Sequence record: NC_027399.1
Length of the DNA: 64,000 nt
Strand: one strand, 5' to 3'
The stretch's first letter is position 1; each line of letters opens with the position of its first letter. Under the pieces are notes generated by a model that was not told the DNA's origin, made no database searches, and worked only from the letters and a program-made list of their open reading frames with translations. Positions 22,657 through 64,000 of this stretch are shown one piece after another. The position numbers and the translations under genes are program-made.

Positions 22657-23721
22657 ATGAAAGAAAAAGTTTATGTATATATTGGACGTTTCCAAATTCC
22701 ACATATTGGTCATGAAGAAGTCCTCAAACATGCGATCAAAATTGCAGATCGTGTTATCATTCAGGTCGGTTCAAGTGAACTGGCTCGTGATCCAAAAAAT
22801 CCATTCACGTTTGAAGAACGTAAGTCAGTACTAGAAGAAATTACAAAACGTGTAGCTCAAGATGAATGGAATAAAGGTCGAACTGTTAAAATCGATATTA
22901 TGCCATTACATGATTATGTATATGATAATAATGCATGGCTAAAAGAAGTACAGGATAATGTTAAAACATGTACTTCAAGTAATGATATTACTATTACCGG
23001 TTGTCGTAAAAATGGTGATACTAGTACTGAATATCTTAACTATTTTCCTCAATGGAAAAATGACTTCATTAACGAAGTACAAAGTAATGCAAAGGGTACT
23101 ATTAGTAGTACTGAACTACGCGAAGCTTTCTTTGTCTCTGGTAAAGTTCCAACTGAATTTGTTTCAAAAGAAACAACAGAATTTCTAGAAAATTTTGTCA
23201 GTACTAAACCGGATGTATTCGATAATCTTATTAAAGAATATGAATTCATTAATCGTTATATTGAACAAATGAAAGAAGCACTACCTTATGATATTCCATT
23301 TTTAACAGCAGATAACATCGTCGTCAGTTGTGGTCACGTTCTTCTTATTCGTAGAAGAACATATCCAGGAAAAGGATTATTAGCTATGCCGGGTGGATAT
23401 TTTCAATGTTGGGATGATAAAGACCAGATTGATACTGCAATTCGTGAATTAAAAGAAGAAACTAAAATCGATGTACCTGAAAAAGTGCTTCGTGGTAATA
23501 TTGTTAGTGCAACAGACTTTACTGACATGAATAGAAGTCTTCGCTGGCGAATTCTAACTAAAGCTGTTCATATTCAATTACCTGACGTCACTCTACCTAA
23601 AGTTAAAGGAAGTGATGATGCAGAAAAAGCTCAGTGGATTCCACTAAGCGATGTAGAAAAATATCGTGATCAGTTCTTTGAGGACCATTATTCTATTTTG
23701 GCTTCAGTACTGAAACTATAA
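22657..23721 (+). CDS. nadM: Bifunctional NMN adenylyltransferase / ADP-ribose pyrophosphatase (NadM-Nudix, NatV-like)
   Basis: GRFQIPHIGH (HxGH), NPFTFEER, ISSTELR, Nudix box GG.....D......AIRELKEET and FFEDH. Confidence 0.92.
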   Translation: MKEKVYVYIGRFQIPHIGHEEVLKHAIKIADRVIIQVGSSELARDPKNPFTFEERKSVLEEITKRVAQDEWNKGRTVKIDIMPLHDYVYDNNAWLKEVQDNVKTCTSSNDITITGCRKNGDTSTEYLNYFPQWKNDFINEVQSNAKGTISSTELREAFFVSGKVPTEFVSKETTEFLENFVSTKPDVFDNLIKEYEFINRYIEQMKEALPYDIPFLTADNIVVSCGHVLLIRRRTYPGKGLLAMPGGYFQCWDDKDQIDTAIRELKEETKIDVPEKVLRGNIVSATDFTDMNRSLRWRILTKAVHIQLPDVTLPKVKGSDDAEKAQWIPLSDVEKYRDQFFEDHYSILASVLKL

Positions 23722-23796: not shown

Positions 23797-25269
23797 ATGA
23801 AAAACGTAAATCCAAATGTAAACTTTATTTTAAACTGCGACAGCTATAAGATTCAACACAGAAAAATGCTCAAAAAGCATGTTGATGGTTATTACAGTAC
23901 TATTGTACCTCGTAAAAGCTCTCCACATAGCAACCATGTAGTTGTGGCTGGTTTGCAATACACAATTAATACCTATATCAATATTCAGATTACCAAAGAA
24001 GATGTTGATGAAGCTGAAATTGAAATTCGTGAACAAGGTTCACGTTTTGATAGAACTATTTGGGATAAAATCGTCAATGAGTTTGGTGGTAAAGTTCCAG
24101 TAAAAATTAGTGCTATTAAAGAAGGTACAGTTGTTCCAGTTCAATCAGTAGTTTGTGTTGTTGAAGCTAAAGATGAGTTTGCATTTTTGGCTAGTTATAT
24201 TGAAACTTGTATTCAACGTGGTGTATGGTATAGCAGTACTGTAGCATCTGAATGTCGTGCAATGAAAAAAATTCTTGCTGATGTAATGCAACGTCATGCT
24301 GGTCATAAGAATGTAGATTATCATTTCCACAACTTTGGAGATCGTAGTGCAACTTGTTTTGAACATGCATATGTAGCTGGTATGGCACATGCAATTATGT
24401 TCAATGGTTCGGATAGTTTAACTTCAAATCGTTATATTAAAGCTCACTATAATACTACCAAAGCGTATCTGAGTTCAGTTGACGCTACTGAACATAGCGT
24501 TATGTGCAGTAATAGTGATGCTGAACATCGCAATGATTATGGTGCAGCAGTAATGGCGGTAGATCATTGGGAAGAACAAGTTACAATGTGGGAAGAAGAT
24601 GGATTAGGTGTACCAGTAACTTCATGTGTTATTGATACTTATAATGATTATCGCTTTGTCCGTGACTTTATCGGTACTAAATTAAAAGACCGTATTGTTG
24701 AAATTGGCAAACGAGGTGGTCGCTTTGTTCTTCGTCCTGATTCACGAATTCCTAAAGAAATTTGTATTGATGTAATCGAAATTCTAATGGAAAAGTTTGG
24801 TTATACTATTAACGAACATGGTTACAAAGTACTACCACCATATATTGGAGTAATTCAAGGTGATGGTGTTAATTTCGATAGTATTCATGAAATTCTAGAT
24901 ATTCTTGATGAAAAGAAATTATCCCTTGAAAACATTGTATTTGGTTGTGGTACCAAATTGGTTAACCCTGAACGTGGTCGTGATCTTTATAGTTGGTCAA
25001 TGAAAGGTACTGCACAACATGTCGAAGATGAACGTGAATGGCAAGACCTATTCAAAGATCCAGCAGGTGAACCAGGCAAACGTTCACATAAAGGGCGTGT
25101 AGTAACCTGGAAATGTAAAGTATCTGGTAAGATTTTTGTTGATCGTGATGATCTTGATAAAATTAATCATTTCATTGAAAATCTACTTGTACCAATGTAT
25201 GACTGCGGTAAAATTATGAATTTCAGTACTTTTGATGAAGTTCGTGAGCGTGCTAACGCAGGTATCTAA
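23797..25269 (+). CDS. nadV: Nicotinamide phosphoribosyltransferase
   Basis: DSYK..H, HNFGDR, ATEHSVM, DTY, LRPDS, IQGDGV and FGCG. Confidence 0.92.
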   Translation: MKNVNPNVNFILNCDSYKIQHRKMLKKHVDGYYSTIVPRKSSPHSNHVVVAGLQYTINTYINIQITKEDVDEAEIEIREQGSRFDRTIWDKIVNEFGGKVPVKISAIKEGTVVPVQSVVCVVEAKDEFAFLASYIETCIQRGVWYSSTVASECRAMKKILADVMQRHAGHKNVDYHFHNFGDRSATCFEHAYVAGMAHAIMFNGSDSLTSNRYIKAHYNTTKAYLSSVDATEHSVMCSNSDAEHRNDYGAAVMAVDHWEEQVTMWEEDGLGVPVTSCVIDTYNDYRFVRDFIGTKLKDRIVEIGKRGGRFVLRPDSRIPKEICIDVIEILMEKFGYTINEHGYKVLPPYIGVIQGDGVNFDSIHEILDILDEKKLSLENIVFGCGTKLVNPERGRDLYSWSMKGTAQHVEDEREWQDLFKDPAGEPGKRSHKGRVVTWKCKVSGKIFVDRDDLDKINHFIENLLVPMYDCGKIMNFSTFDEVRERANAGI

Positions 25270-25276
25270 TATATTT

Positions 25277-25307
25277 TGGAGAGTCATTATGGCTCTCCAT
25301 TCTTTTT
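25277..25307 (+). terminator. Rho-independent terminator
   Basis: TGGAGAG...CTCTCCA followed by a T-rich tail. Confidence 0.75.
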
Positions 25308-25332
25308 AATTAAAGTAATAAAGGTATATAAT

Positions 25333-25509
25333 GTGCTTATTGGTTTTAAAATAGTTATTATCTTCTTTATATGGTTTATTACATATCAAATAATTGAAGA
25401 AATCAGTACTAAATTCTCTTCAAATAATTTCTTAGTAGACGTTTGTTTATTATCCATTGCGGTACTGGGATTTTTGATCATACCGGTTATATTTTCATAT
25501 TTTATATGA
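25333..25509 (+). CDS. Small two-TM membrane protein (GTG start)
   Basis: SD AAGGT; hydrophobic segments. Confidence 0.5.
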   Translation: MLIGFKIVIIFFIWFITYQIIEEISTKFSSNNFLVDVCLLSIAVLGFLIIPVIFSYFI

Positions 25510-25515
25510 AAAATG

Positions 25516-25544
25516 TTGACATTTTTTTCTTCATAAGATATAGT
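25516..25544 (+). promoter_or_regulatory. Sigma70-type promoter
   Basis: TTGACA-17-TATAGT. Confidence 0.8.
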
Positions 25545-25577
25545 ATAGATATTAACAATTAATAACGGATATCAAAA

Positions 25578-25844
25578 ATGTTCCAACATCTTTTGGATTT
25601 TTTCTGTACTGTAAACATTGAAAAACAAGCTAAGTTCATTATTGTAGAACTGGTCTGGTTTTACTTAGGTGGCCTGGTAATTACACTGTGTGCATTTTTA
25701 CATAGTGATATTAATCTTGGTATTTCCTATGCAAAAAGTGAGAATAAACCATCATTACTACTCAAGTTTATTAGATGTTTATTGTACTTAGCGTATATCT
25801 TATATATTGTTGGATTTTTTGGTGTATATTATGTAATTCATTAG
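25578..25844 (+). CDS. Small two-TM membrane protein
   Basis: Two hydrophobic helices. Confidence 0.7.
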   Translation: MFQHLLDFFCTVNIEKQAKFIIVELVWFYLGGLVITLCAFLHSDINLGISYAKSENKPSLLLKFIRCLLYLAYILYIVGFFGVYYVIH

Positions 25845-25854
25845 GAATTAATCG

Positions 25855-26592
25855 ATGATTAGTACTAAATTCATTAAAAAAGCTGGTGATAAAAGATTAC
25901 TAATCATTTCTGGAAATGGATTGTCAATGGATAGTGGTTTTGACTTATATGACATTCCTGATAATTTTCAGATAAATGATGTATGTAATATTGCCAGTTT
26001 AGGTACAAAATATCACGTAGTTCATTCTTATTATAATACTCTTAGAGTTAAATTAAAAGATATTGAACCAAACGAAATGCATTACTATATTAAATCATTA
26101 CAAGATGAGTATGGTGATAACTTTTTACACATGACCAGTAATGTAGATGATTTATATACAAGAATTGGTGGCACTGAATTAAAATTACATGGTAATATTA
26201 AAGAGGTTATAGAAAACTACACCGCTGATGGTTCTGAAATAGAAATAAAAGAATTAGGTTATGAACCATATATTCCATGTAGTGGTATTTTTTCTAAACC
26301 AGGTGTTACATTAATTGGTGAGTTCCATAGTTATTTTTATGGATATAAAATCCCAATTTATGAAGAACGAAATGAAATACTAAAATCATTAAATGAAAAT
26401 GATACTGTAGTAGTAATTGGAAGTTCTGATTCAGTACTGAAATGGAGCCATTTAATAAATGAGAAATGTTACACAGTACTAATCAATATAAGAAAAAATG
26501 AAAACGATCATCGTTTCAATGAACGAATTTATAAATCTTGTTCCAAATCTGTATTAGATTTATCTGGAATAATTTCAAAAAGGATGGTATAG
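25855..26592 (+). CDS. Divergent Sir2/sirtuin-family protein
   Basis: ISGNGLSMDSG, TSNVDDL, KLHG, KPGVTLIGE and VIGSS. Confidence 0.78.
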   Translation: MISTKFIKKAGDKRLLIISGNGLSMDSGFDLYDIPDNFQINDVCNIASLGTKYHVVHSYYNTLRVKLKDIEPNEMHYYIKSLQDEYGDNFLHMTSNVDDLYTRIGGTELKLHGNIKEVIENYTADGSEIEIKELGYEPYIPCSGIFSKPGVTLIGEFHSYFYGYKIPIYEERNEILKSLNENDTVVVIGSSDSVLKWSHLINEKCYTVLINIRKNENDHRFNERIYKSCSKSVLDLSGIISKRMV

Positions 26593-27146
26593 TGGAAAAA
26601 ATTGATTTCGGTACAAGAAGTACCAGAGCCGATTTTGCTTTTTGTTGGATTTTTGCCCGAGATTGTACTCCATACTCTGGATATGATGATCAACTTGGAA
26701 TTGATAAAGTAAATTTAGTACTAGCACAATTACGTTTTGATGGTTGCATTGGGGCGTGTGGTGGTATGGTGGAAAGTGATGATAATTCATTAGAAGAAGC
26801 TGTACAGCGTGAAGTACTGGAAGAAATTGGTTATACTGTTGATTTAACACATTTAAAACCACTTCTAAGCTTGCGTTTACCATCAGGCAGCCATTGCCAT
26901 AGCTATAGTTATGAAGTTGATTACAATGAATTACAAAGCATTAGAGATGGTGCTTATAGAGGAATACATTTCAATCCAGAATGTGCTGGTGTGAATCTTT
27001 TACATATTTCAAGATACACAAAAGGTTATGGAAACGAATGTGGATATAATGTATTATTAGAACAACACTGGAGTGGTACATCAAAAGAAGAATTTATGTA
27101 CCTTGTAGAGACAGAAAATCTATTAATTAGTTATTTGAAGGAATGA
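26592..27146 (+). CDS. Nudix hydrolase resembling the NUDT16 family
   Basis: QLRFDGCIGACGGMVESDDNSLEEAVQREVLEEIG; the GTG start overlaps the sirtuin TAG, with SD AAGGA. Confidence 0.8.
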   Translation: MEKIDFGTRSTRADFAFCWIFARDCTPYSGYDDQLGIDKVNLVLAQLRFDGCIGACGGMVESDDNSLEEAVQREVLEEIGYTVDLTHLKPLLSLRLPSGSHCHSYSYEVDYNELQSIRDGAYRGIHFNPECAGVNLLHISRYTKGYGNECGYNVLLEQHWSGTSKEEFMYLVETENLLISYLKE

Positions 27147-27478
27147 TAATGGGATACCAGTTATTTTTAGATGATATTCGTTACCCATCAAAATATTATA
27201 GTACTGAAATGGTACTATGTAGATCTTATGATGAAGCTGTCAAATATGTAGAAGAACATGGAATTCCAGAATTTATCAGTTTTGACCATGACCTTGGAGA
27301 TACTTCTGATAATGAAAAAACTGGTTATTCATTTGCTAAATTTTTGATTGATTATATGATTGATAATGGCATCAGTAATGAATTCAAATATAATATTCAT
27401 AGCTCAAATCCAGTAGGTGCAGATAATATCGATTCTTATCTAAAAGCTGGTTTTAAATATCTAAGAGAAAATATGTAA
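27143..27478 (+). CDS. Cyclic-phosphate-processing receiver-like domain protein
   Basis: LFLDDIR.P, RSYDEA, ISFDHDLG, TGY..AK and IHSSNPVG. Confidence 0.7.
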   Translation: MIMGYQLFLDDIRYPSKYYSTEMVLCRSYDEAVKYVEEHGIPEFISFDHDLGDTSDNEKTGYSFAKFLIDYMIDNGISNEFKYNIHSSNPVGADNIDSYLKAGFKYLRENM

Positions 27479-27795
27479 TGAAGATTGGTAATCATATTTT
27501 TGCATGTTTTATTAGTATATGTATCTGTTCGGTTGTTGCTGGATTGTGGTATAATTCAATGAGGTACGAAAAACACAATATTAGATATAATTCAGTTAAA
27601 GTTGTTGGTATTGGTCAATGTTCTAATAAAAGTTCGAGTACCGAGTGTTCTTTTTGGTACGAAGATGGAAATTCTACCCAATTTGCAATTTCAGATAATC
27701 CAGTTTCAATTGGTCAAATTGTTTATCAAATGTGCTGGACAGAAAAGGCTCGTGGTGATAGATGTTATGTAAATTACCAAACGAGTAAGCAGTAA
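27478..27795 (+). CDS. Membrane-anchored Cys-containing hypothetical protein
   Basis: N-terminal TM; TAATG coupling. Confidence 0.7.
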   Translation: MKIGNHIFACFISICICSVVAGLWYNSMRYEKHNIRYNSVKVVGIGQCSNKSSSTECSFWYEDGNSTQFAISDNPVSIGQIVYQMCWTEKARGDRCYVNYQTSKQ

Positions 27796-27872: not shown

Positions 27873-29312
27873 ATGAAAAAATATACTATTGACACTAACG
27901 TAGTACTTTCTGATCCAAATGCAATCACTGCGTTTGATGGTACATCTGTTATTCTTCCATTTAAAGTACTAGAAGAACTAGATTCTATTAAAAGTCGCAA
28001 TGTTGACGTATCTCGTGATGCACGTTTTGCAATCCGAAATATTGATGCAATTCTAGCTGATGCAACTTATGAAGAGATTAGAAATACTGGTGTTGATATT
28101 TCAAAAGTACATACGAATATGAGTGCTTCCAGTAAATTATTTGTAATTACCGATGAAGAAGCAGAAGCTTTAATTCGTACACAAGATAAAGAAGAAAAAT
28201 TAGTCACTCTTCTAAAAAGTACAGTTCCTGATGATAAAATCATTTTAGTAGCACTAGCAACTGATTCAGTACTAGTTACAAAAGATATCAATATGCGTCT
28301 AAAAGCACTATCTTATGGTGTTGAGGTTCAAGATTATCGTCATGATGTAGTACTAGAAGATAGTGATCTTATTCATGTCGGTCAACATCATCTTGACATT
28401 GATTTTTGGGAAATGTTTAAAGATATTCCTGATGCAGAAATTAAATCCAATCAAATTGGTAGAAAATTGTATCACTATATCAGTACTGAACTATTAAAAG
28501 ATTCGTTACCAACAAATATGTATATTGGTGATTATTTGTATGATAATTCTGATGTATTGTTTGTATATGATGGTATTGTTGAGCTTGATGATTCAGAAGG
28601 TAATGCAATTGAAGGTGAGTTTTTTGTATTTCAAGATGTAGGACAATCGGTTGCTTTACGTGCTAAAGTTTGGGATATTAAATCAAAAAATATCCAACAA
28701 TCATTAGCAATTAATAGTATTCTCGATCCTGACGTACATCTTACTGTACTTCTTGGTTCTGCTGGTACTGGTAAAACACTAATTACAATTGCAAGTGCAC
28801 TTGAATTAGTACTAGAGAAGAAAAAATATTCTCGTATTATTTTCTCAAAAACTCAAGATTCACAGTTTGAAGATATTGGTTTCCTACCAGGATCAGAAAG
28901 TGAAAAAGTAATTCCTTTCTGTGGTGCAGCAATTGATGCATTAGAGTTTTTACATCGTGATGACCGCGATCCACAAGGTAGTATTGAAGAAATTATGAAA
29001 CGTAATGTTATTCAATTTAAAGCATTGAACTTCGTTCGTGGTCGTAGTTTCACTGATACAATTCTTGTTATCGACGAATTCCAAAATATTTCACCCGCAC
29101 AAGCGAAGACAATCTTGACACGTGCTGGACAAAACTGTAAAGTAATCATTATGGGAAACCTATCACAAATTGATAATAAATTTATTAGTGCAGTGAATAG
29201 TGGTTTAACATATGTTACTGAAAAATTTAAAGATTGGTCCGGTTGTCGTATCATCGAGTTAGAAGGTGTTGTGCGTTCACCATTAGCCGAATTTGCTGAG
29301 AAAAATATGTAA
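27873..29312 (+). CDS. phoH: PIN-PhoH (PhoH2/YlaK-like) ATPase
   Basis: PIN motifs IDTNV, VLEELD, DDKI and TKD.N.R; PhoH motifs GSAGTGKT, RGRSF, DEFQN, GN..QID and RSPLAE. Confidence 0.9.
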   Translation: MKKYTIDTNVVLSDPNAITAFDGTSVILPFKVLEELDSIKSRNVDVSRDARFAIRNIDAILADATYEEIRNTGVDISKVHTNMSASSKLFVITDEEAEALIRTQDKEEKLVTLLKSTVPDDKIILVALATDSVLVTKDINMRLKALSYGVEVQDYRHDVVLEDSDLIHVGQHHLDIDFWEMFKDIPDAEIKSNQIGRKLYHYISTELLKDSLPTNMYIGDYLYDNSDVLFVYDGIVELDDSEGNAIEGEFFVFQDVGQSVALRAKVWDIKSKNIQQSLAINSILDPDVHLTVLLGSAGTGKTLITIASALELVLEKKKYSRIIFSKTQDSQFEDIGFLPGSESEKVIPFCGAAIDALEFLHRDDRDPQGSIEEIMKRNVIQFKALNFVRGRSFTDTILVIDEFQNISPAQAKTILTRAGQNCKVIIMGNLSQIDNKFISAVNSGLTYVTEKFKDWSGCRIIELEGVVRSPLAEFAEKNM

Positions 29313-29318
29313 TAATAT

Positions 29319-29349
29319 TTTCGGTACTGAACAACACTCAGTACCGAAA
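29319..29349. terminator. Hairpin after phoH, probable terminator
   Basis: TTTCGGTACTGA-7-TCAGTACCGAAA. Confidence 0.6.
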
Positions 29350-29372: not shown

Positions 29373-29401
29373 TTGACATATCAATCGTTGTATCCTATAA
29401 T
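29373..29401 (+). promoter_or_regulatory. Consensus sigma70 promoter
   Basis: TTGACA-17-TATAAT with an A-rich UP region. Confidence 0.9.
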
Positions 29402-38005: not shown

Positions 38006-38353
38006 ATGTTTTTTGAATATGATGATGAAAATATATATCCAATTGTGGTTAATAAGTATAAAGAACCATATGATGTATATATTGGAAGAGGTTCAAAATG
38101 GGGTAATCCGTTTACTCACATAAAAAATCGTGATACGAAAGCTGAGTTTATTGTCAATACCAGAGAAGAATCTATTTCAAAATATAGAGAATGGATATTT
38201 AATAAAATTGAAAATGGTGAAATTACCATTGATGAGTTACTAGAATTATCTGGTAAAAAATTAGGATGTTTTTGTAAGCCTAAATCATGTCATGGTGATG
38301 TTCTTGTGGAAATAGTGAGTGCGTTATTAGATGAATTATCAAACAATAATTAA
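38006..38353 (+). CDS. DUF4326-like protein
   Basis: DVYIGRGSKWGNPF...L.GK.LGCFCKPKSCHGDVL. Confidence 0.8.
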   Translation: MFFEYDDENIYPIVVNKYKEPYDVYIGRGSKWGNPFTHIKNRDTKAEFIVNTREESISKYREWIFNKIENGEITIDELLELSGKKLGCFCKPKSCHGDVLVEIVSALLDELSNNN

Positions 38354-53299: not shown

Positions 53300-55966
53300 T
53301 TATAATGATATTTGCCAATATATAGTAGATGCATCTAAATTATTAGAACTTGTTATAGTGAAAGATACACCATTAACGATATTAGAAATTGATAATGTTC
53401 CTATATTAGAAGATGATAATATTCTTTTAAGATCTATATTAGATACATATCTTAAAGTGCTCGCTGTACTAGATGTAGATAATTTAACAGCAGATGTATT
53501 AATGGTGGCAGTGCCTGCTGTTAATGTTACCATACCAGATGTTGGTGCGGTTGTTGAATTTATATCTAAAGTGTTGTTATTTAACATTGGTGACAATGGC
53601 TGTGATGAATATCCACCCAACAAATACCATAAGTTCCCATATCCTGCCATATTAGTATTTTTAACACTAACTAGTTCTGGTCTAATACCAGACGAGCCTC
53701 TAAAATATAAACATCTTGTTTGAATCGTACTGTAAGGAAAATCACAATTGTCAATATAAAGTGAAAATTGATTTGCAGGATCTGAATTAGAGCCACAATC
53801 GACACATGCACTTGAATTATCAATTCCTCTTGAATTTATAATCCTTCCGCCCAACATAGCATATCCATATTGATTGTTAAGAGCTTCACAATCTTCAATA
53901 TTTCCACCTTCCCATACTAAACTGAATCCGTTTCTACCATTATTAGTTGCTTTGCACCCAATGAGTCTAGTATTGATCGCACCGTCACCCTGACCGAATC
54001 CATCTAATGTTGAATAATCAGCCAAACAATTAATATATTTTACATTTCTTGCTCTTATTTGGAATCCATCATCACCAGATTTATATGCACGACAATTTGA
54101 AAATGTTATATTTCTTCCAATATCATGAGTATCAAAACCTGACAATGTTGACGACGTTGAAGTACAATCATTTATTAATATACCATTTGGTTCTCCATAT
54201 ATGGATGACCAATTTATAGAAACTCCATGTCTACAATCATCAAAAAAGCATTTATCAACAGTAACTTCTTCTGAATATCCTAAGATTTCTACACCATACC
54301 ACCCCTGATGATATGCATTACAATTTTCAATTAATACATTTCTACAACTGTTTATTTTTAATGCAGTTCTTCCGCTAACATCACCTGTGTATTTTTCTTT
54401 AGAACCATATAATTGTGTATTTTTAATAACGATATTATCACAATATACCATATTCATTGTTATTGGGAATAACGTAGTATAATTGATATTATTGAATGTT
54501 AAACCATCAATATTTACATTTTTCACAATATCCATTTTAGAAATTAATGTATTATCACTTATTGTAAAATCATAAAGGGCAATTTTATCAATATATAATT
54601 GATTAGCATCAATCTTCGTTATTTGTCTCATTATTCCAATTTTAACACCTTGAGCATTAACCCCTTCAACCAATTTTTCAGAACGAATTTCTACATAATC
54701 ACCAACTGAAAATTTAGATGCATCAGTAACATTAACAATAAAAGATGAACTAGACACGTCACTTGTTAATGTTGTTGTTATTGTAGTTGATACTGAACCA
54801 GAACAAATCAGACCTTGAATCGTTGGTCCAGATGGGAAAAGGAAAACATCTTTATTAAAATATAAATTTGTATTACTTTTTATAGTTAGTGCTTTAGTTA
54901 AAGTTAAATTAGAATCAAATCTCAACGATACGTTACCAGTAGATAAAAATGTATTAATACCATCAATAGTAGTAAACCATGATGATAATGCTGGACCAAT
55001 ATATCTTCTTTTAATCCTTTTATTATTAATGACGAAACATGTTCCACCATCTTCAACGGTAATGGTGTCATTATTGTCATAATAAAAATAACCAGCACCC
55101 TCCGTTGTGTTTAATGTTTTACCACAAACGAAAATCTCATTAATTTCATCCCAATTTATATTTTTTATATCTGAATAAATTATTTTAGATATACTATTAC
55201 TATTATATAATATATCAAATTCTTCTTGTATAGAATTTCCAGATTTAGTATTAATATATGAAGATGCATTTACATCCAATAATTCTTGTTTTAAAACATA
55301 TTCATCACTTTGGATAATAATATCACCAAGCATTATAATAATTTCGTCATCTTGATATAATTCTTCAGAAAAAGTGATGATTCTATCAGCACCAATACTA
55401 TAAGCAGTAATGGGATTCTGCAAAACACCATTAATATAAACAATTGCAGTACTGAAATCATATGGCACTTGAATTGTTGTTTGGCCTTGCATTGCATTAG
55501 CTGTATAAATTCTATTAAGTTTATCATTAGTACTGATATTCGGATTGCCAATAAAAACATATAATAAATCACCAGCTTCTAATTCAGTAGTGAATGTTAA
55601 TGTGCTACCAGATACGGTGTAATTCAACCCAGGTAATTGAATTGAACCATTAACAAATACAGTTATAGTACTGAATGTGAATGGAATATTAAAATCAGTT
55701 TGACCATCAGTTGCTGATGCAGAATATGTTTTAATACTTGCATTAAAATTCGGAGTAATTTTTTCAAAACCAGTACTGGTTTCGGGATTATTACCAAGGA
55801 CACCAACCCCATTCCACACTGTACCATCAGTGTATAACCAATAATCATCTGATGTTGCAGTAGTACCAGATTTCCACATTTTTAATGAATTTTTAGTTAG
55901 TCCATAAGCAACTTCAACAGTAGGTAGATGTGCGTTCCAGTCCAGAGTTAAACCCTCTGTTTCCAT
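53300..55966 (-). CDS. Tailspike / putative depolymerase with two docking-type repeats, 888 aa; lacks its N-terminal anchor because of an upstream frameshift
   Basis: AHLPTVEVAYGL module, two INGxLQ-type repeats, beta-helix. Confidence 0.85.
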   Translation of the reverse strand: METEGLTLDWNAHLPTVEVAYGLTKNSLKMWKSGTTATSDDYWLYTDGTVWNGVGVLGNNPETSTGFEKITPNFNASIKTYSASATDGQTDFNIPFTFSTITVFVNGSIQLPGLNYTVSGSTLTFTTELEAGDLLYVFIGNPNISTNDKLNRIYTANAMQGQTTIQVPYDFSTAIVYINGVLQNPITAYSIGADRIITFSEELYQDDEIIIMLGDIIIQSDEYVLKQELLDVNASSYINTKSGNSIQEEFDILYNSNSISKIIYSDIKNINWDEINEIFVCGKTLNTTEGAGYFYYDNNDTITVEDGGTCFVINNKRIKRRYIGPALSSWFTTIDGINTFLSTGNVSLRFDSNLTLTKALTIKSNTNLYFNKDVFLFPSGPTIQGLICSGSVSTTITTTLTSDVSSSSFIVNVTDASKFSVGDYVEIRSEKLVEGVNAQGVKIGIMRQITKIDANQLYIDKIALYDFTISDNTLISKMDIVKNVNIDGLTFNNINYTTLFPITMNMVYCDNIVIKNTQLYGSKEKYTGDVSGRTALKINSCRNVLIENCNAYHQGWYGVEILGYSEEVTVDKCFFDDCRHGVSINWSSIYGEPNGILINDCTSTSSTLSGFDTHDIGRNITFSNCRAYKSGDDGFQIRARNVKYINCLADYSTLDGFGQGDGAINTRLIGCKATNNGRNGFSLVWEGGNIEDCEALNNQYGYAMLGGRIINSRGIDNSSACVDCGSNSDPANQFSLYIDNCDFPYSTIQTRCLYFRGSSGIRPELVSVKNTNMAGYGNLWYLLGGYSSQPLSPMLNNNTLDINSTTAPTSGMVTLTAGTATINTSAVKLSTSSTASTLRYVSNIDLKRILSSSNIGTLSISNIVNGVSFTITSSNNLDASTIYWQISL

Positions 55967-56220
55967 TTTTTCTTTTAATTTGCTGTATATAACCGGAACC
56001 CAAGCAGTATCTGAAATACCACCATCAGTATTTGGATTATTAGTACTGGTAATATGAGGTAATGTACCTTTCCATACATATCCAGTTTTAATTGAAGTTA
56101 CTGGATCTGTATAATATAAAATTTGGTTGTTTGATACTAATCGTTTGTTAATAACAAAGTCACCAGCATCAATTAGTGCACCTGAAATATTTGTTGCAAA
56201 CTTAAATTGTTCAATGACAT
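55967..56220 (-). pseudogene. Frameshifted 5' part of the 888-aa tailspike
   Basis: SD GAGGT plus ATG 56220 gives MSLNNLS.. and stops after 15 codons. The -1 frame encodes NQILYYTD..GYVWKGTLPH..TDGGISDTAW, continuous with METEG. Confidence 0.8.
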
Positions 56221-56253
56221 ATTAAACCTCATCTAAAAGTTTATGTATAGTAT

Positions 56254-56281
56254 TATTTATGATGCACATTAGAACTAAATA
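56254..56281. promoter_or_regulatory. Back-to-back divergent late promoters
   Basis: CATAAATA on - (56254-61) and CTAAATA on + (56275-81). Confidence 0.6.
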
Positions 56282-56314
56282 CATGAAAGCAAATGCAAAC
56301 TAAGAGGTTTTGAC

Positions 56315-59305
56315 ATGTCTTTAAGTAATTTAAGCTCAAGTAACAGTAATGGGGCATTTCTTGATTATGGAGAATTCAGAAGTGGTGTTTACATCCAAAC
56401 ATCAAATCAGATTTTATACTTCACTGATGAAAATGGAAATAAAGTAGGTTATCAGTGGAAGGGACTTTTGCCTCACACAACAACAACAAATGATCCAAGC
56501 ACGGATGGTGGTATTTCGGATACTGCTTGGTGTAGTATTGTTGGCAGTGGATTTATTGAAAAATTATCAAAAGAGGGGATTGATTTAAGTTGGAAAGCAC
56601 ACTTACCAACAGTTGAAGTTTCTTACAATTTACCGCATAAATCACTAAAAATATGGGAAGAAGGTACGAATAGTACTGATAATGATTATTGGTTATACCC
56701 AGGTGATGGTACCGTGTGGAATGGGATTGGTGTTCTTGGTGATATACCAGATGCACCTTTTAAGCAAATTGTACCACAAAATAATGTAATAGAATGGAGT
56801 GCAATTGCAACAGAAGGACAAAACCAATTTACTGTACCGTATGAATTCACAAATATATCAGTTTTTATTAATGGATTATTACAGAATAAAAGTACTGGTG
56901 GATATGTAGTTAATGGTAGTACTGTTACATTAAATGGTTCATTAAAAGCTGGTGATGACATTCACGTAGTAATATCAAATATCCCTATTAAAAATATAAA
57001 TTATATTACTGATGTTGAATTATCACAACCCGATGCAGCACAAAAAATTGGATTATTGCATGGTGGAAATATACAAAATTTACAAAATTTTCTTTCTTTT
57101 GATATGTTTAATATTGATAAAACTGGTTCAACTGATGTAACTAGTCAAATAAATAATATTTTTTCATTAGCAAATCAATTAAATATTCCAATAAAACAAC
57201 ATGATGGTACATATTTAGTTTCTGGCTCCACTATATTTACAATAAACACGGATTGTGATCTATCCGGCGTAACAATTTTACCATCTTCTAATTTTACTGG
57301 ATATTTTCTATATACACAAAATGAACAGCCAACAACATATAATTCATCTTCATCATTGGTCACTTTAATAAATTCAGCAACAATTAATGCAAATGATTCA
57401 ATATTATATGGATTAATAAATGATACCACATTGGATGGTAATGCTATTTTTATGAAAGGCAATGATCCTCTATATGTTGCTCGTGGCACAACAAAAAATT
57501 GGTGGTGTAATACGAGAATATCAAATCGAGGTAAAATGGATGATTATTTAAAATATGGGGTATCAGGTATAAATGAAGTTATTTCATTACCTATATCAAA
57601 AAAAGTAACTACAATAAAATTACCAAATTGGGATTTTATAAATCAACCTGCTAATAATGGCGTAATAAGATTTAATAATATTTCTAGATATAGAATACAC
57701 GGTGGTAGTGTTTTTAATAGGCCACTTAATGATATAAATAAAGATCCAGTTATAATTAGTATAAATTATGCATATGATATAATACTTCAAGATTTTTATG
57801 ATGAATATCCATCTTGGCCATTAGTAGGTGGCTCTATTGCTTATGCATATACTATAAATTTCAACTATATTAATCGTGTTACATTTAAAGATATTAATTC
57901 ACAAGGTTATGGTTGGGGAATTGTTGGGGGGCAACTAGCAACTAATATTACATATCTTCGTTGTAATATTAATAGAGTTGATATGCATGATCCATTTATG
58001 GGGTATTTAAAAATTTTAGACTGTGATTTGGGATATTATGGCGTATCTGCAACTGGTATGGGAGATATGTATATTGAAAGAACTACTTTTAATATTGATG
58101 ATCTAGCATTTAATGGTTGGAGAGAAGTTGATGGTATAATAAACACTAGACCGGATTTTGGTGGGTGGTTTGATGGTGGTGTATATATAAAAGATATTAC
58201 AATTATTGGAGATGCATCCAAATTTAGAGAAATTAATAATCGCGGAGTTTCTTTATTTTCAGCATATTCATATAATGCAACATTAAGTTATATTCCGAAT
58301 GGATCACCAGTCGAACCGTGGGGATTTAAAGAAATTATAGTTAATGGATTACGATGCACTAAACCTATAACAGGAAAAAGATTTTCATCACTAGTATATG
58401 CTGCTTCTGTACAAAATGTAGATTATTTTCCAAGACATGTAAAATTTAATAATTGTGATTTTAATTCTTCTGATGTTGAATGTATAGATTTACATGGATG
58501 GAAAATAACACCAGACAATTCAAGTAAAACATCAATATCAAATACTATGAATTTTAAATCAACAAATTTTATAGAATTCACTGATTGTTCATTTGTGGGG
58601 TTAGAAATTTTAAGACCATATTCTTCATATGATTATATGAATTTAGAGTTAAAACTTAATAATTGTAAATATATTGGTTCAAACATTTCTCCTATTAGTT
58701 TTTACACTGATCAAGTTGGAAATTACGAGTTTACAAACTGTGATATCAATTTTATTAGTGATACTACAAAGAGTACTTCAAGTTTATCAAATAGACAGTC
58801 ATCATTTGTAATAAATGGTGGTCAGATAAATTCTGTATCAGTACCATTTTCAATATTATATAATAGTGGTTATTCGACTCCAGTTTTAGTTAATAATACA
58901 ATTTTTAAAGGTTCATTTTCACAATCATCAGTGACTTCTATTAATTTAAATGTGGCAGAATTCGCACAATTATCAAATTGTAGATTTTATAGTAATGTGA
59001 ATAATTCTTATATATCACCAGCATTATGGCTAGGTAGTACTTCGAACTCAGCAACATCAATAACTGTTATGCGTGGAAATAAAATTAATACAGTTATAAC
59101 CAATACCACAACTGTTAGTGGTATATCCATAAAAACTGATATAATTCCATTTGGAGTTGCATCTGGACACATAAATGGGTCTTTTTATGTTGATGCTACT
59201 GGAACAACTGGAACATACCAATTGTATTTAAATTCGTTGAATTTGAAATCACAAATTGGAAAAATTGTTTCAAATGGTACAATATCAGGAATTTATTTAC
59301 AGTAA
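56315..59305 (+). CDS. Tailspike / putative capsule depolymerase with one docking-type repeat, 996 aa
   Basis: MSL-type N-terminus, AHLPTVEV module, INGLLQ repeat, DKTGSTDVT..I head motif, beta-helix. Confidence 0.87.
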   Translation: MSLSNLSSSNSNGAFLDYGEFRSGVYIQTSNQILYFTDENGNKVGYQWKGLLPHTTTTNDPSTDGGISDTAWCSIVGSGFIEKLSKEGIDLSWKAHLPTVEVSYNLPHKSLKIWEEGTNSTDNDYWLYPGDGTVWNGIGVLGDIPDAPFKQIVPQNNVIEWSAIATEGQNQFTVPYEFTNISVFINGLLQNKSTGGYVVNGSTVTLNGSLKAGDDIHVVISNIPIKNINYITDVELSQPDAAQKIGLLHGGNIQNLQNFLSFDMFNIDKTGSTDVTSQINNIFSLANQLNIPIKQHDGTYLVSGSTIFTINTDCDLSGVTILPSSNFTGYFLYTQNEQPTTYNSSSSLVTLINSATINANDSILYGLINDTTLDGNAIFMKGNDPLYVARGTTKNWWCNTRISNRGKMDDYLKYGVSGINEVISLPISKKVTTIKLPNWDFINQPANNGVIRFNNISRYRIHGGSVFNRPLNDINKDPVIISINYAYDIILQDFYDEYPSWPLVGGSIAYAYTINFNYINRVTFKDINSQGYGWGIVGGQLATNITYLRCNINRVDMHDPFMGYLKILDCDLGYYGVSATGMGDMYIERTTFNIDDLAFNGWREVDGIINTRPDFGGWFDGGVYIKDITIIGDASKFREINNRGVSLFSAYSYNATLSYIPNGSPVEPWGFKEIIVNGLRCTKPITGKRFSSLVYAASVQNVDYFPRHVKFNNCDFNSSDVECIDLHGWKITPDNSSKTSISNTMNFKSTNFIEFTDCSFVGLEILRPYSSYDYMNLELKLNNCKYIGSNISPISFYTDQVGNYEFTNCDINFISDTTKSTSSLSNRQSSFVINGGQINSVSVPFSILYNSGYSTPVLVNNTIFKGSFSQSSVTSINLNVAEFAQLSNCRFYSNVNNSYISPALWLGSTSNSATSITVMRGNKINTVITNTTTVSGISIKTDIIPFGVASGHINGSFYVDATGTTGTYQLYLNSLNLKSQIGKIVSNGTISGIYLQ

Positions 59306-63985: not shown

Positions 63986-64000
63986 GCAAAAATAACTATC

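Follow-up and report, generated by a model that had tools for sequence, protein, structure and literature searches.

Human NUDT16 is a Nudix hydrolase that forms a homodimer with a two-subunit "mouth" and has decapping, inosine diphosphatase (IDPase) and ADP-ribose (ADPr)-processing activity (PMC6459841, PMC4485890). The protein buries the adenosine of ADPr and di-ADPr in the respective complexes and leaves the distal ribose open to solvent at the mouth (PMC6459841), so that substituted ADPr is tolerated. For jumbo phages, a Nudix-containing gene neighbourhood has been described computationally. In 2021, Iyer, Anantharaman, Krishnan, Burroughs and Aravind defined the cyclic-phosphate-processing receiver-like domain (cREC) and linked it to Nudix proteins and to systems using nicotinamide adenine dinucleotide (NAD+) in these phages (PMC7824862). 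In 2022, Iyer et al. predicted an NAD-dependent RNA-repair/ADPr-processing role for a neighbourhood of sirtuin, Nudix, cREC and PIN, partly with a 2H phosphodiesterase (PMC9503650, section 3.7.3). According to their proposal, a KptA-like sirtuin strips 2'-phosphates from RNA, while Nudix, cREC and 2H process ADPr>P; the phage Nudix domains are assigned to T4-NudE-like or NadM-like clades, and NUDT16 is nowhere mentioned (PMC9503650). In addition, PMC13464706 describes NARP2, the reconstitution of NAD+ by NadV and nicotinamide mononucleotide (NMN) adenylyltransferase. Here, we report on gp642, a Nudix protein of Klebsiella jumbo phage K64-1 encoded in such a neighbourhood, which belongs to the NUDT16/X29 family.

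The analysed stretch of DNA (hereafter the window; 64,000 nucleotides) is 100% identical to phage K64-1 (Alcyoneusvirus, RaK2-like, 346.6 kb), with window positions corresponding to record positions minus 282602. Window position 64000 is the final base (346602) of the linearised circular K64-1 record, and features at the right edge therefore run on at record position 1. The gene under study is:

26592..27146, + strand: gp642, Nudt16-like Nudix hydrolase, 184 aa (open reading frame (ORF) and translation, PF22327, PDB sequence and profile matches, AlphaFold2 (AF2) model, Foldseek)

This ORF had been pointed out in an earlier note on the same DNA, and RefSeq gives it identical coordinates under the label 'NUDIX hydrolase'. 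Its start codon, GTG, shares sequence with the TAG stop of Sir2 upstream, with AAGGA 8 nt before it, and the TGA stop overlaps the ATG of the downstream cREC gene gp643 (ATGA). We rejected an alternative TTG start at 26538 (202 aa), as the starts of orthologues coincide with the GTG, and RefSeq concurs.

Sequence and fold comparisons consistently place gp642 with NUDT16 and its Xenopus counterpart X29. The protein matches the Pfam model PF22327 (Nudt16-like) with an E-value of 7.8e-16 and 58.9 bits (cut-off 27), while the generic NUDIX model PF00293 scores lower at 35.3 bits. A phmmer search against all PDB chains returned human NUDT16 first (3e-10 to 1e-9), followed by Xenopus X29 (2e-7), TIRR/syndesmos (~1e-3) and the best ordinary Nudix protein (0.03). 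A profile built from 63 relatives matched NUDT16/X29 in the PDB at 1e-25, with X29 as the top match (2.4e-25); the best generic Nudix match of the same profile (3e-11) came through the Nudix box only. The AF2 model of gp642 has a predicted local distance difference test (pLDDT) score of 96.8. When it was searched against the PDB with Foldseek, the top 39 matches were all NUDT16, X29 or TIRR with template modelling (TM) scores of 0.72-0.80 (E 3e-14), and the next folds (CoA pyrophosphatase, NUDT9) reached TM scores of 0.49-0.62. The modelled fold includes both the N-terminal strand and C-terminal base-binding helix of NUDT16/X29. Thus, gp642 is confirmed as a member of the NUDT16/X29 family rather than of a generic Nudix family.

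The family assignment had been made in the earlier note from the letters alone, and the details behind it hold. The 35-residue segment on which it was based is present in gp642 and aligns ungapped with residues 48-82 of human NUDT16 in the HMMER alignment, with 18 of 35 positions identical by manual count. The NUDT16 string quoted there is that of the PDB chains in this alignment, and the two downstream motifs (H.Y..EL....GA.R..H..E..G and L...F/W.G...E) fall within its aligned columns. The note had named a best profile match to generic bacterial Nudix families as part of the outcome that would speak against it; instead, Pfam, the sequence and profile searches of the PDB and the fold search each have NUDT16/X29 as their best match.

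Compared with the characterised proteins human NUDT16 and Xenopus X29 (PDB 2XSQ, 5W6X, 6B09, 6X7U, 1U20), gp642 likewise carries PF22327, has the same fold and retains the RxDG motif, the Nudix glutamates and the extra-box glutamate. It is ~30% identical to human NUDT16 over 141 residues. It differs in its prokaryotic-viral setting with Sir2, cREC and PhoH genes and in its placement in a separate non-eukaryotic clade. The paralogue TIRR (NUDT16L1, syndesmos) is catalytically inactive. It shares the fold (TM ~0.72) and is described as a regulator that binds 53BP1 and RNA, whereas gp642 retains every catalytic residue examined. We also considered phage T4 NudE.1, a phage Nudix protein whose T4 record note lists activity on ADP-ribose, flavin adenine dinucleotide (FAD) and Ap3A, as a characterised family member. 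NudE.1 matches the generic NUDIX model alone and not PF22327, which places it outside the Nudt16-like family, and we rejected it.

To compare catalytic and pocket residues, we used the HMMER alignment, an L-INS-i alignment including snake and gecko NUDT16, and the structures described in PMC4485890 and PMC6459841. The corresponding positions are:

Phosphate binding: human NUDT16 R50 and D52; gp642 R48 and D50
Metal carbonyl: human NUDT16 G59; gp642 G57
Nudix glutamates: human NUDT16 E76, E79 and E80; gp642 E74, E77 and E78
Extra-box metal ligand: human NUDT16 E136; gp642 E130
Base stacking: human NUDT16 H24; gp642 F17
Base hydrogen bond: human NUDT16 Q170; gp642 E167
Base recognition: human NUDT16 G-F57-P loop; gp642 G-A-C

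Across 63 family members, the four glutamates E74, E77, E78 and E130 never vary, and R48 and D50 hardly do. As its catalytic residues are intact and conserved, gp642 looks like an active enzyme rather than a TIRR-like pseudoenzyme and is apparently a catalytically competent Nudix pyrophosphatase. The base-recognition set of NUDT16 (His24, Gly-Phe57-Pro, Gln170) is not matched by gp642. An aromatic residue, F17, is invariant in the family at the H24 position, and His at this position is virtually confined to the metazoan clade. At the Q170 position, nearly all non-metazoan members carry Glu, and Gln is almost confined to the metazoan clade. The loop reads G[ATH][CSVT]GG throughout the cREC-linked phage clade and GFPGG in most other members. 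Judging from these residues, the base pocket of gp642 is plausibly similar, not identical, to that of NUDT16, with its aromatic and hydrogen-bonding character kept. Tresaugues et al. linked the GFP motif to the preference for 6-oxo-purines (PMC4485890); since this motif is lost in the cREC-linked phage clade, specificity may have shifted there, although this is a weak indication. The Nudix box is one residue beyond canonical length in gp642 and in vertebrate NUDT16, a feature of 27 of ~150 members that are scattered over the tree. This scattered placement makes convergence likelier, and the likeness of the 35-residue stretch to NUDT16 therefore probably owes something to convergence.

The family reaches far beyond animals. 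While a word-indexed protein search found only 7 relatives, an exhaustive HMMER search through 1.84 billion representatives (E <= 1e-3) recovered 201 clusters of Nudt16-like proteins, all with the xRW/FDGxxGxxGG signature. One 13-member clade represents metazoan NUDT16 (snakes, gecko, salmon, tick, nematode, flatworm), with cryptophyte-type sequences branching beside it; the rest of the sampled family is metagenomic, phage or bacterial. Bacterial carriers comprise six metagenome-assembled genomes (MAGs) of Arcobacteraceae (four of them chromosome-level records) as well as MAGs of Clostridia and Obscuribacterales. In the one Arcobacteraceae locus examined, the neighbours are housekeeping genes such as alanine racemase. 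This locus survey in bacteria ran on a narrow alignment with a single peptide pattern and is thus a small sample. Among phages, 92 INPHARED records contain a Nudt16-like match, including the enterobacterial jumbo phages 121Q, PBECO4, GAP32, BF, CBB, Munch and fHe-Yen9-04, T4-like Aeromonas phages (with the gene labelled nudE) and Lahexavirus. One phage copy is labelled 'U8 snoRNA-decapping enzyme' in UniProt. Taken together, the Nudt16-like family is mostly prokaryotic and viral.

In a careful IQ-TREE maximum-likelihood tree, the eukaryotes are united in a clade of their own. The clade of cREC-linked phages (support 100/98) is nested in a non-eukaryotic clade of 25 members (100/99), so that the gp642 clade does not group with metazoan NUDT16. 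Constraining phage and eukaryote sequences together cost 69 units of log-likelihood (delta lnL 69) with a p-value of 0.078 in the approximately unbiased (AU) test, and this grouping is disfavoured, not formally rejected. An earlier AU test on a quick, under-optimised tree, in which the constrained tree outscored the unconstrained one, was redone on the careful tree. The earlier note had described gp642 as resembling eukaryotic NUDT16 rather than bacterial Nudix proteins and had proposed a phylogeny as a check. The family was named rightly, but its distribution was not, given the bacterial chromosomes and the phage records above, and the tree sets the phage clade apart from the eukaryotic one.

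The gene for gp642 lies within a string of genes on the same strand:

25516..25544, + strand: sigma-70-like promoter match TTGACA-17-TATAGT, 11/12, candidate unit start (consensus match only)
25578..25844, + strand: gp640, small membrane protein, first gene past the promoter-like site (ORF list, RefSeq)
25855..26592, + strand: gp641, CobB-like sirtuin, 245 aa (PF02146, E 2.7e-11; PHROG 2162)
27143..27478, + strand: gp643, cREC (cyclic-phosphate-processing receiver-like), 111 aa (PF20274, E 1.9e-24)
27478..27795, + strand: gp644, small predicted membrane protein, 105 aa (PHROG 14661)
27873..29312, + strand: gp645, PIN-PhoH, 479 aa, predicted RNase and ATPase (PF13638, PF02562)
29319..29349, no strand assigned: hairpin with a 14-bp stem 3' of PIN-PhoH, candidate unit end (called on the minus strand)
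29373..29401: perfect promoter match 3' of PhoH (consensus match)

Overlapping starts and stops chain the four genes for Sir2, the Nudt16-like protein, cREC and the small membrane protein, and PIN-PhoH follows next. Among solved structures, gp641 is closest to CobB (1s5p/6rxj, ~5e-14) with the catalytic HG motif aligned, and no zinc-binding cysteines were seen by eye in the aligned region. For gp643, the AF2 model (pLDDT 89) gave weak Foldseek matches to receiver domains (TM 0.45-0.6); the fold search provided no enzyme analogue for the cREC fold, and a PDB sequence search gave no meaningful match. RefSeq labels gp643 'nudix hydrolase'. This is a mislabel, as the protein is cREC (PF20274) and matches no Nudix model; the name probably comes from orthologues that have Nudix and cREC in one ORF.

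Further upstream, the window contains a second group of NAD-related genes:

22657..23721, + strand: gp637, NadM-type NMN adenylyltransferase with a fused generic Nudix domain (PF01467, PF00293; CTP_transf_like, NUDIX)
23797..25269, + strand: gp638, NadV, nicotinamide phosphoribosyltransferase (PF04095, PF18127; NAPRTase, NAMPT_N)
25277..25299, + strand: terminator-like hairpin directly 3' of NadV

Against the curated model NF006629, gp638 scores 384 bits (E 9e-115), under its cut-off of 405. The defining pair of NARP2 is present in K64-1 as gp637 and gp638, upstream of the gp641-gp645 string; gp642 itself is not one of its defining enzymes and appears in the next transcription unit. The hairpin after NadV and the promoter-like site before gp640, together with the hairpin and the promoter match 3' of PhoH, suggest as consensus matches only that Sir2, Nudix, cREC and PhoH form a transcription unit apart from NadM/NadV. 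In the window, terminator-like sites are more frequent than expected (11 observed vs 2.6 expected), and promoter-like sites do not exceed, in total, the number expected from shuffling.

To see how widely this arrangement is kept, we compared 16 related loci, comprising 14 loci from viral contigs (12 of them from contigs of 346-378 kb) and two distinct metagenomic contexts. cREC and PIN-PhoH lie downstream of the Nudix gene in all 16, and in 9 of them Nudix and cREC are fused in a single ORF. Sir2 is directly upstream of Nudix in 14 of the 16 loci, and a gp644 homologue occupies the same position between cREC and PhoH, also in 14. NadV is found farther upstream in 14/16. The 6-kb flank extends as far as NadM-Nudix in 12 loci, and the gene was detected in these. 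An Acb1-like 2H phosphodiesterase gene stands upstream of Sir2 in 13 of the 16, not in K64-1/RaK2. Searching with the cREC part of a fused protein yielded 20 fused clusters, every one of them with PF22327. In one related locus (L015 4854-5608), the Sir2 orthologue appears as two overlapping tblastn pieces in different frames, which suggests a frameshift or an assembly error. Between NadV and Sir2, at 25276-25844, the window has two small membrane-protein ORFs, where relatives (L003 4068-4514 and 12 further loci) have the Acb1-like gene.

The earlier note had grouped gp642 with NadV, NadM-Nudix and the sirtuin into a four-enzyme NAD/ADP-ribose turnover system. These three partners do all adjoin gp642, but its closest partners cREC and PIN-PhoH were missed. 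NadV and NadM seem to form a unit of their own, and the tightest association is that of cREC, Sir2 and PIN-PhoH.

Other members of the family also occur with NAD genes. An 888-kb metagenomic contig (L042 2798-7837) carries a string of genes for a PncB-type nicotinate phosphoribosyltransferase (NAPRTase), an NMNAT-like protein, a Nudt16-like protein (278 aa) and NadE, which resembles a Preiss-Handler NAD operon into which a Nudt16-like gene has been inserted, and an NMNAT-like::Nudt16-like fusion exists in the family. Nudt16-like proteins are thus linked to NAD genes in at least three independent contexts. In two metagenomic proteins (P0037, P0099), the Nudt16-like domain is fused to HD_4 (RelA/SpoT-type HD), in either order. 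In another protein (P0211), cREC is fused to PF12694, which we take to be a YpsA/SLOG-type 'MoCo carrier' domain and which would then be a further link of cREC to ADPr-type ligand domains.

The neighbourhood as such is not the undescribed system that the earlier note had suspected, as a sirtuin/Nudix/cREC/PIN neighbourhood was already predicted computationally by Iyer et al. in 2021 and 2022. The Nudix::cREC proteins of their 2022 study (Serratia phage BF, Cronobacter GAP32, Pectobacterium CBB) are orthologous to gp642 with 52-55% identity, and the BF, GAP32 and CBB loci contain NadM, NadV, Sir2, cREC, the membrane protein and PIN-PhoH as in K64-1. In contrast to these phages, K64-1/RaK2 encode Nudix and cREC as separate overlapping genes, in a locus without 2H/Acb1. 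Of the 2022 definition, the sirtuin linked to Nudix, cREC and PIN is thus found at K64-1 in consecutive genes, and the linked 2H is not. New in our analysis are the specific identification of the Nudix of the Nudix-cREC module as NUDT16-type, the mostly prokaryotic and viral distribution of the family and its repeated ties to NAD genes. Papers on Cad1, R-bodies and NARP3 were followed as leads and set aside, as they concern only mammalian NUDT16 or unrelated pathways.

Based on these data, we propose that gp642, together with cREC, cleaves the pyrophosphate of an ADPr derivative that stems from sirtuin-consumed NAD+, within a gene string of jumbo phages of the RaK2/121Q/GAP32 type; we give this reading a probability of about 0.5. 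The phage sirtuin would use NAD+ to produce nicotinamide and an ADPr derivative substituted on the distal ribose. Candidates for this product are O-acyl-ADPr (from deacylation), ADPr-1''-2''-cyclic phosphate (from the removal of RNA 2'-phosphates, as proposed by Iyer et al.) and plain ADPr; host NADases might be an alternative source. cREC would process the distal substituent, e.g. the cyclic phosphate, and the Nudt16-like enzyme would cut the pyrophosphate to yield AMP and a (modified) ribose-5-phosphate. From the freed nicotinamide, the adjoining NadV/NadM pair (NARP2) could rebuild NAD+. The gp641-gp645 string would be translationally coupled, and its purpose may be RNA repair or the clearance of ADPr-type metabolites during infection. 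Our proposal draws on the codon overlaps at both ends of the gp642 gene, the linkage across 16 loci and the cREC fusions, on the other NAD contexts (the metagenomic NAPRTase/NadE string and the NMNAT-like fusion), on the pocket geometry of NUDT16, and on its agreement with the contextual prediction of Iyer et al. for the same neighbourhood (PMC9503650). We also count in favour that RaK2 has genes for an RNA ligase and a polynucleotide kinase in another part of its genome.

Several observations weigh against this proposal. One phage lineage has Nudix-cREC-PhoH with no detectable adjacent sirtuin, and Aeromonas phages carry stand-alone Nudt16-like genes without Sir2 or cREC. The Acb1/2H protein that accompanies the module in relatives has no homologue anywhere in the 64-kb K64-1 window. 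The operon boundaries are consensus matches only. The Glu at the Q170 position and the GAC loop each fit adenine or hypoxanthine, so that these residues do not fix the substrate. In a bacterial MAG (GCA_964451885.1; L020 6001-7176), a 391-aa Ham1/ITPase::Nudt16-like fusion points to inosine nucleotides. A search of the literature found no experimental work on the Nudix, cREC or sirtuin of the module.

Unlikely, yet to be taken seriously, is the view that gp642 acts on RNA 5' ends, removing NAD, FAD, dephospho-CoA and similar NDP-X caps or a 5' pyrophosphate from host or phage RNA, with cREC (on 2',3'-cyclic-phosphate 3' ends) and the PIN-PhoH nuclease/ATPase as partners in RNA turnover or repair. 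Its closest characterised relatives are RNA decapping enzymes, with X29 being the top match of the family profile; a human NUDT16-FAD complex is known (6x7u), and NUDT16 is reported to act on metabolite caps (PMC7337524). Moreover, PIN-PhoH is the sole invariant downstream partner besides cREC, and other genomes associate cREC with RNA ligases (PMC7824862). The cREC fusion and the Sir2, NadV and NadM neighbours nevertheless point to small-molecule NAD/ADPr chemistry, and the bacterial chromosomal members lie among housekeeping metabolic genes. We consider it rather doubtful that the Nudt16-like/cREC pair is a two-step counter-defence enzyme against ADP-ribose-based messengers or toxic ADPr metabolites of host TIR/SIR2-type systems. 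Its targets would be, for example, ribose-ribose-linked cyclic ADPR isomers or His-ADPR, and it would exploit the binding mode with a buried adenosine and an exposed, substituted distal ribose. Marginally less likely still, but like decapping to be taken seriously, is a role as a nucleotide-pool sanitiser, i.e. a (d)IDP/(d)ITP/XDP diphosphatase resembling mammalian NUDT16, which would keep deaminated purine nucleotides, perhaps also those produced by host deaminase-type defences, from harming phage replication. Inosine diphosphate (IDP) and dIDP are the reported preferred substrates of human NUDT16 (PMC4485890), defence deaminases converting ATP to ITP are known from the Cad1 paper, and the bacterial Ham1 fusion is encoded in a purine-biosynthesis neighbourhood, with adenylosuccinate synthase and SAICAR synthase genes on its flanks. 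The fusion protein retains GFPGG, however, whereas this motif is lost in the cREC-linked phage clade, and the phage operon contains no purine-metabolism genes. As an aside, the Ham1::Nudt16-like fusion echoes the mammalian pairing of ITPA and NUDT16.

The function proposed in the earlier note, an eraser of defensive ADP-ribosylation (DarT on DNA, CmdT on mRNA, PARP-like on protein) that feeds its products into NAD salvage, is improbable. Neither NadV nor NadM uses AMP or ribose-5-phosphate as a substrate, which counts against the salvage part. The fold and catalytic centre are conserved in gp642, and human NUDT16 does process protein-conjugated mono- and poly-ADPr (PMC6459841); but according to this source, Nudix cleavage leaves the phosphoribose form of the conjugate, which is trimming and not erasure. 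No macro, ARH or NADAR glycohydrolase is present in the operon, and no PADLOC model matched the gp642 Nudix, Sir2 or cREC proteins. As the phosphoribose remnant stays in place and there is no accompanying glycohydrolase, this is the weakest of the alternatives to ADPr-derivative cleavage.

Elsewhere in the window, the gene for a DUF4326 protein (PF14216, E 5e-25) lies at 38006-38353 between anaerobic ribonucleotide reductase genes (NrdD, GrcA-like, NrdG). DUF4326 was predicted by Iyer et al. in 2021 to be an enzyme bridging NAD+-utilising signalling systems and DNA modification (PMC7824862). At 54631-56315, ~1.7 kb between divergent tail-fibre/tail-spike clusters contain annotated ORFs of only 20-32 codons and may be regulatory or non-coding.

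NAD+/ADP-ribose chemistry is a main battleground of phage–bacterial immunity, and experiments so far cover only its NAD-rebuilding half (NARP1-3). The module described here is conserved in the 16 related jumbo-phage loci compared, beside NARP2 and mostly beside an Acb1-like anti-CBASS gene. Its NUDT16-type identity provides testable substrates, i.e. distal-ribose-substituted ADPr, metabolite-capped RNA and IDP, and the human structures can guide mutagenesis. NUDT16, usually regarded as an animal enzyme, is part of a mostly prokaryotic and viral family, and if the counter-defence role were true, animal NUDT16 and TIRR would be offshoots of a mainly bacterial and phage enzyme family.

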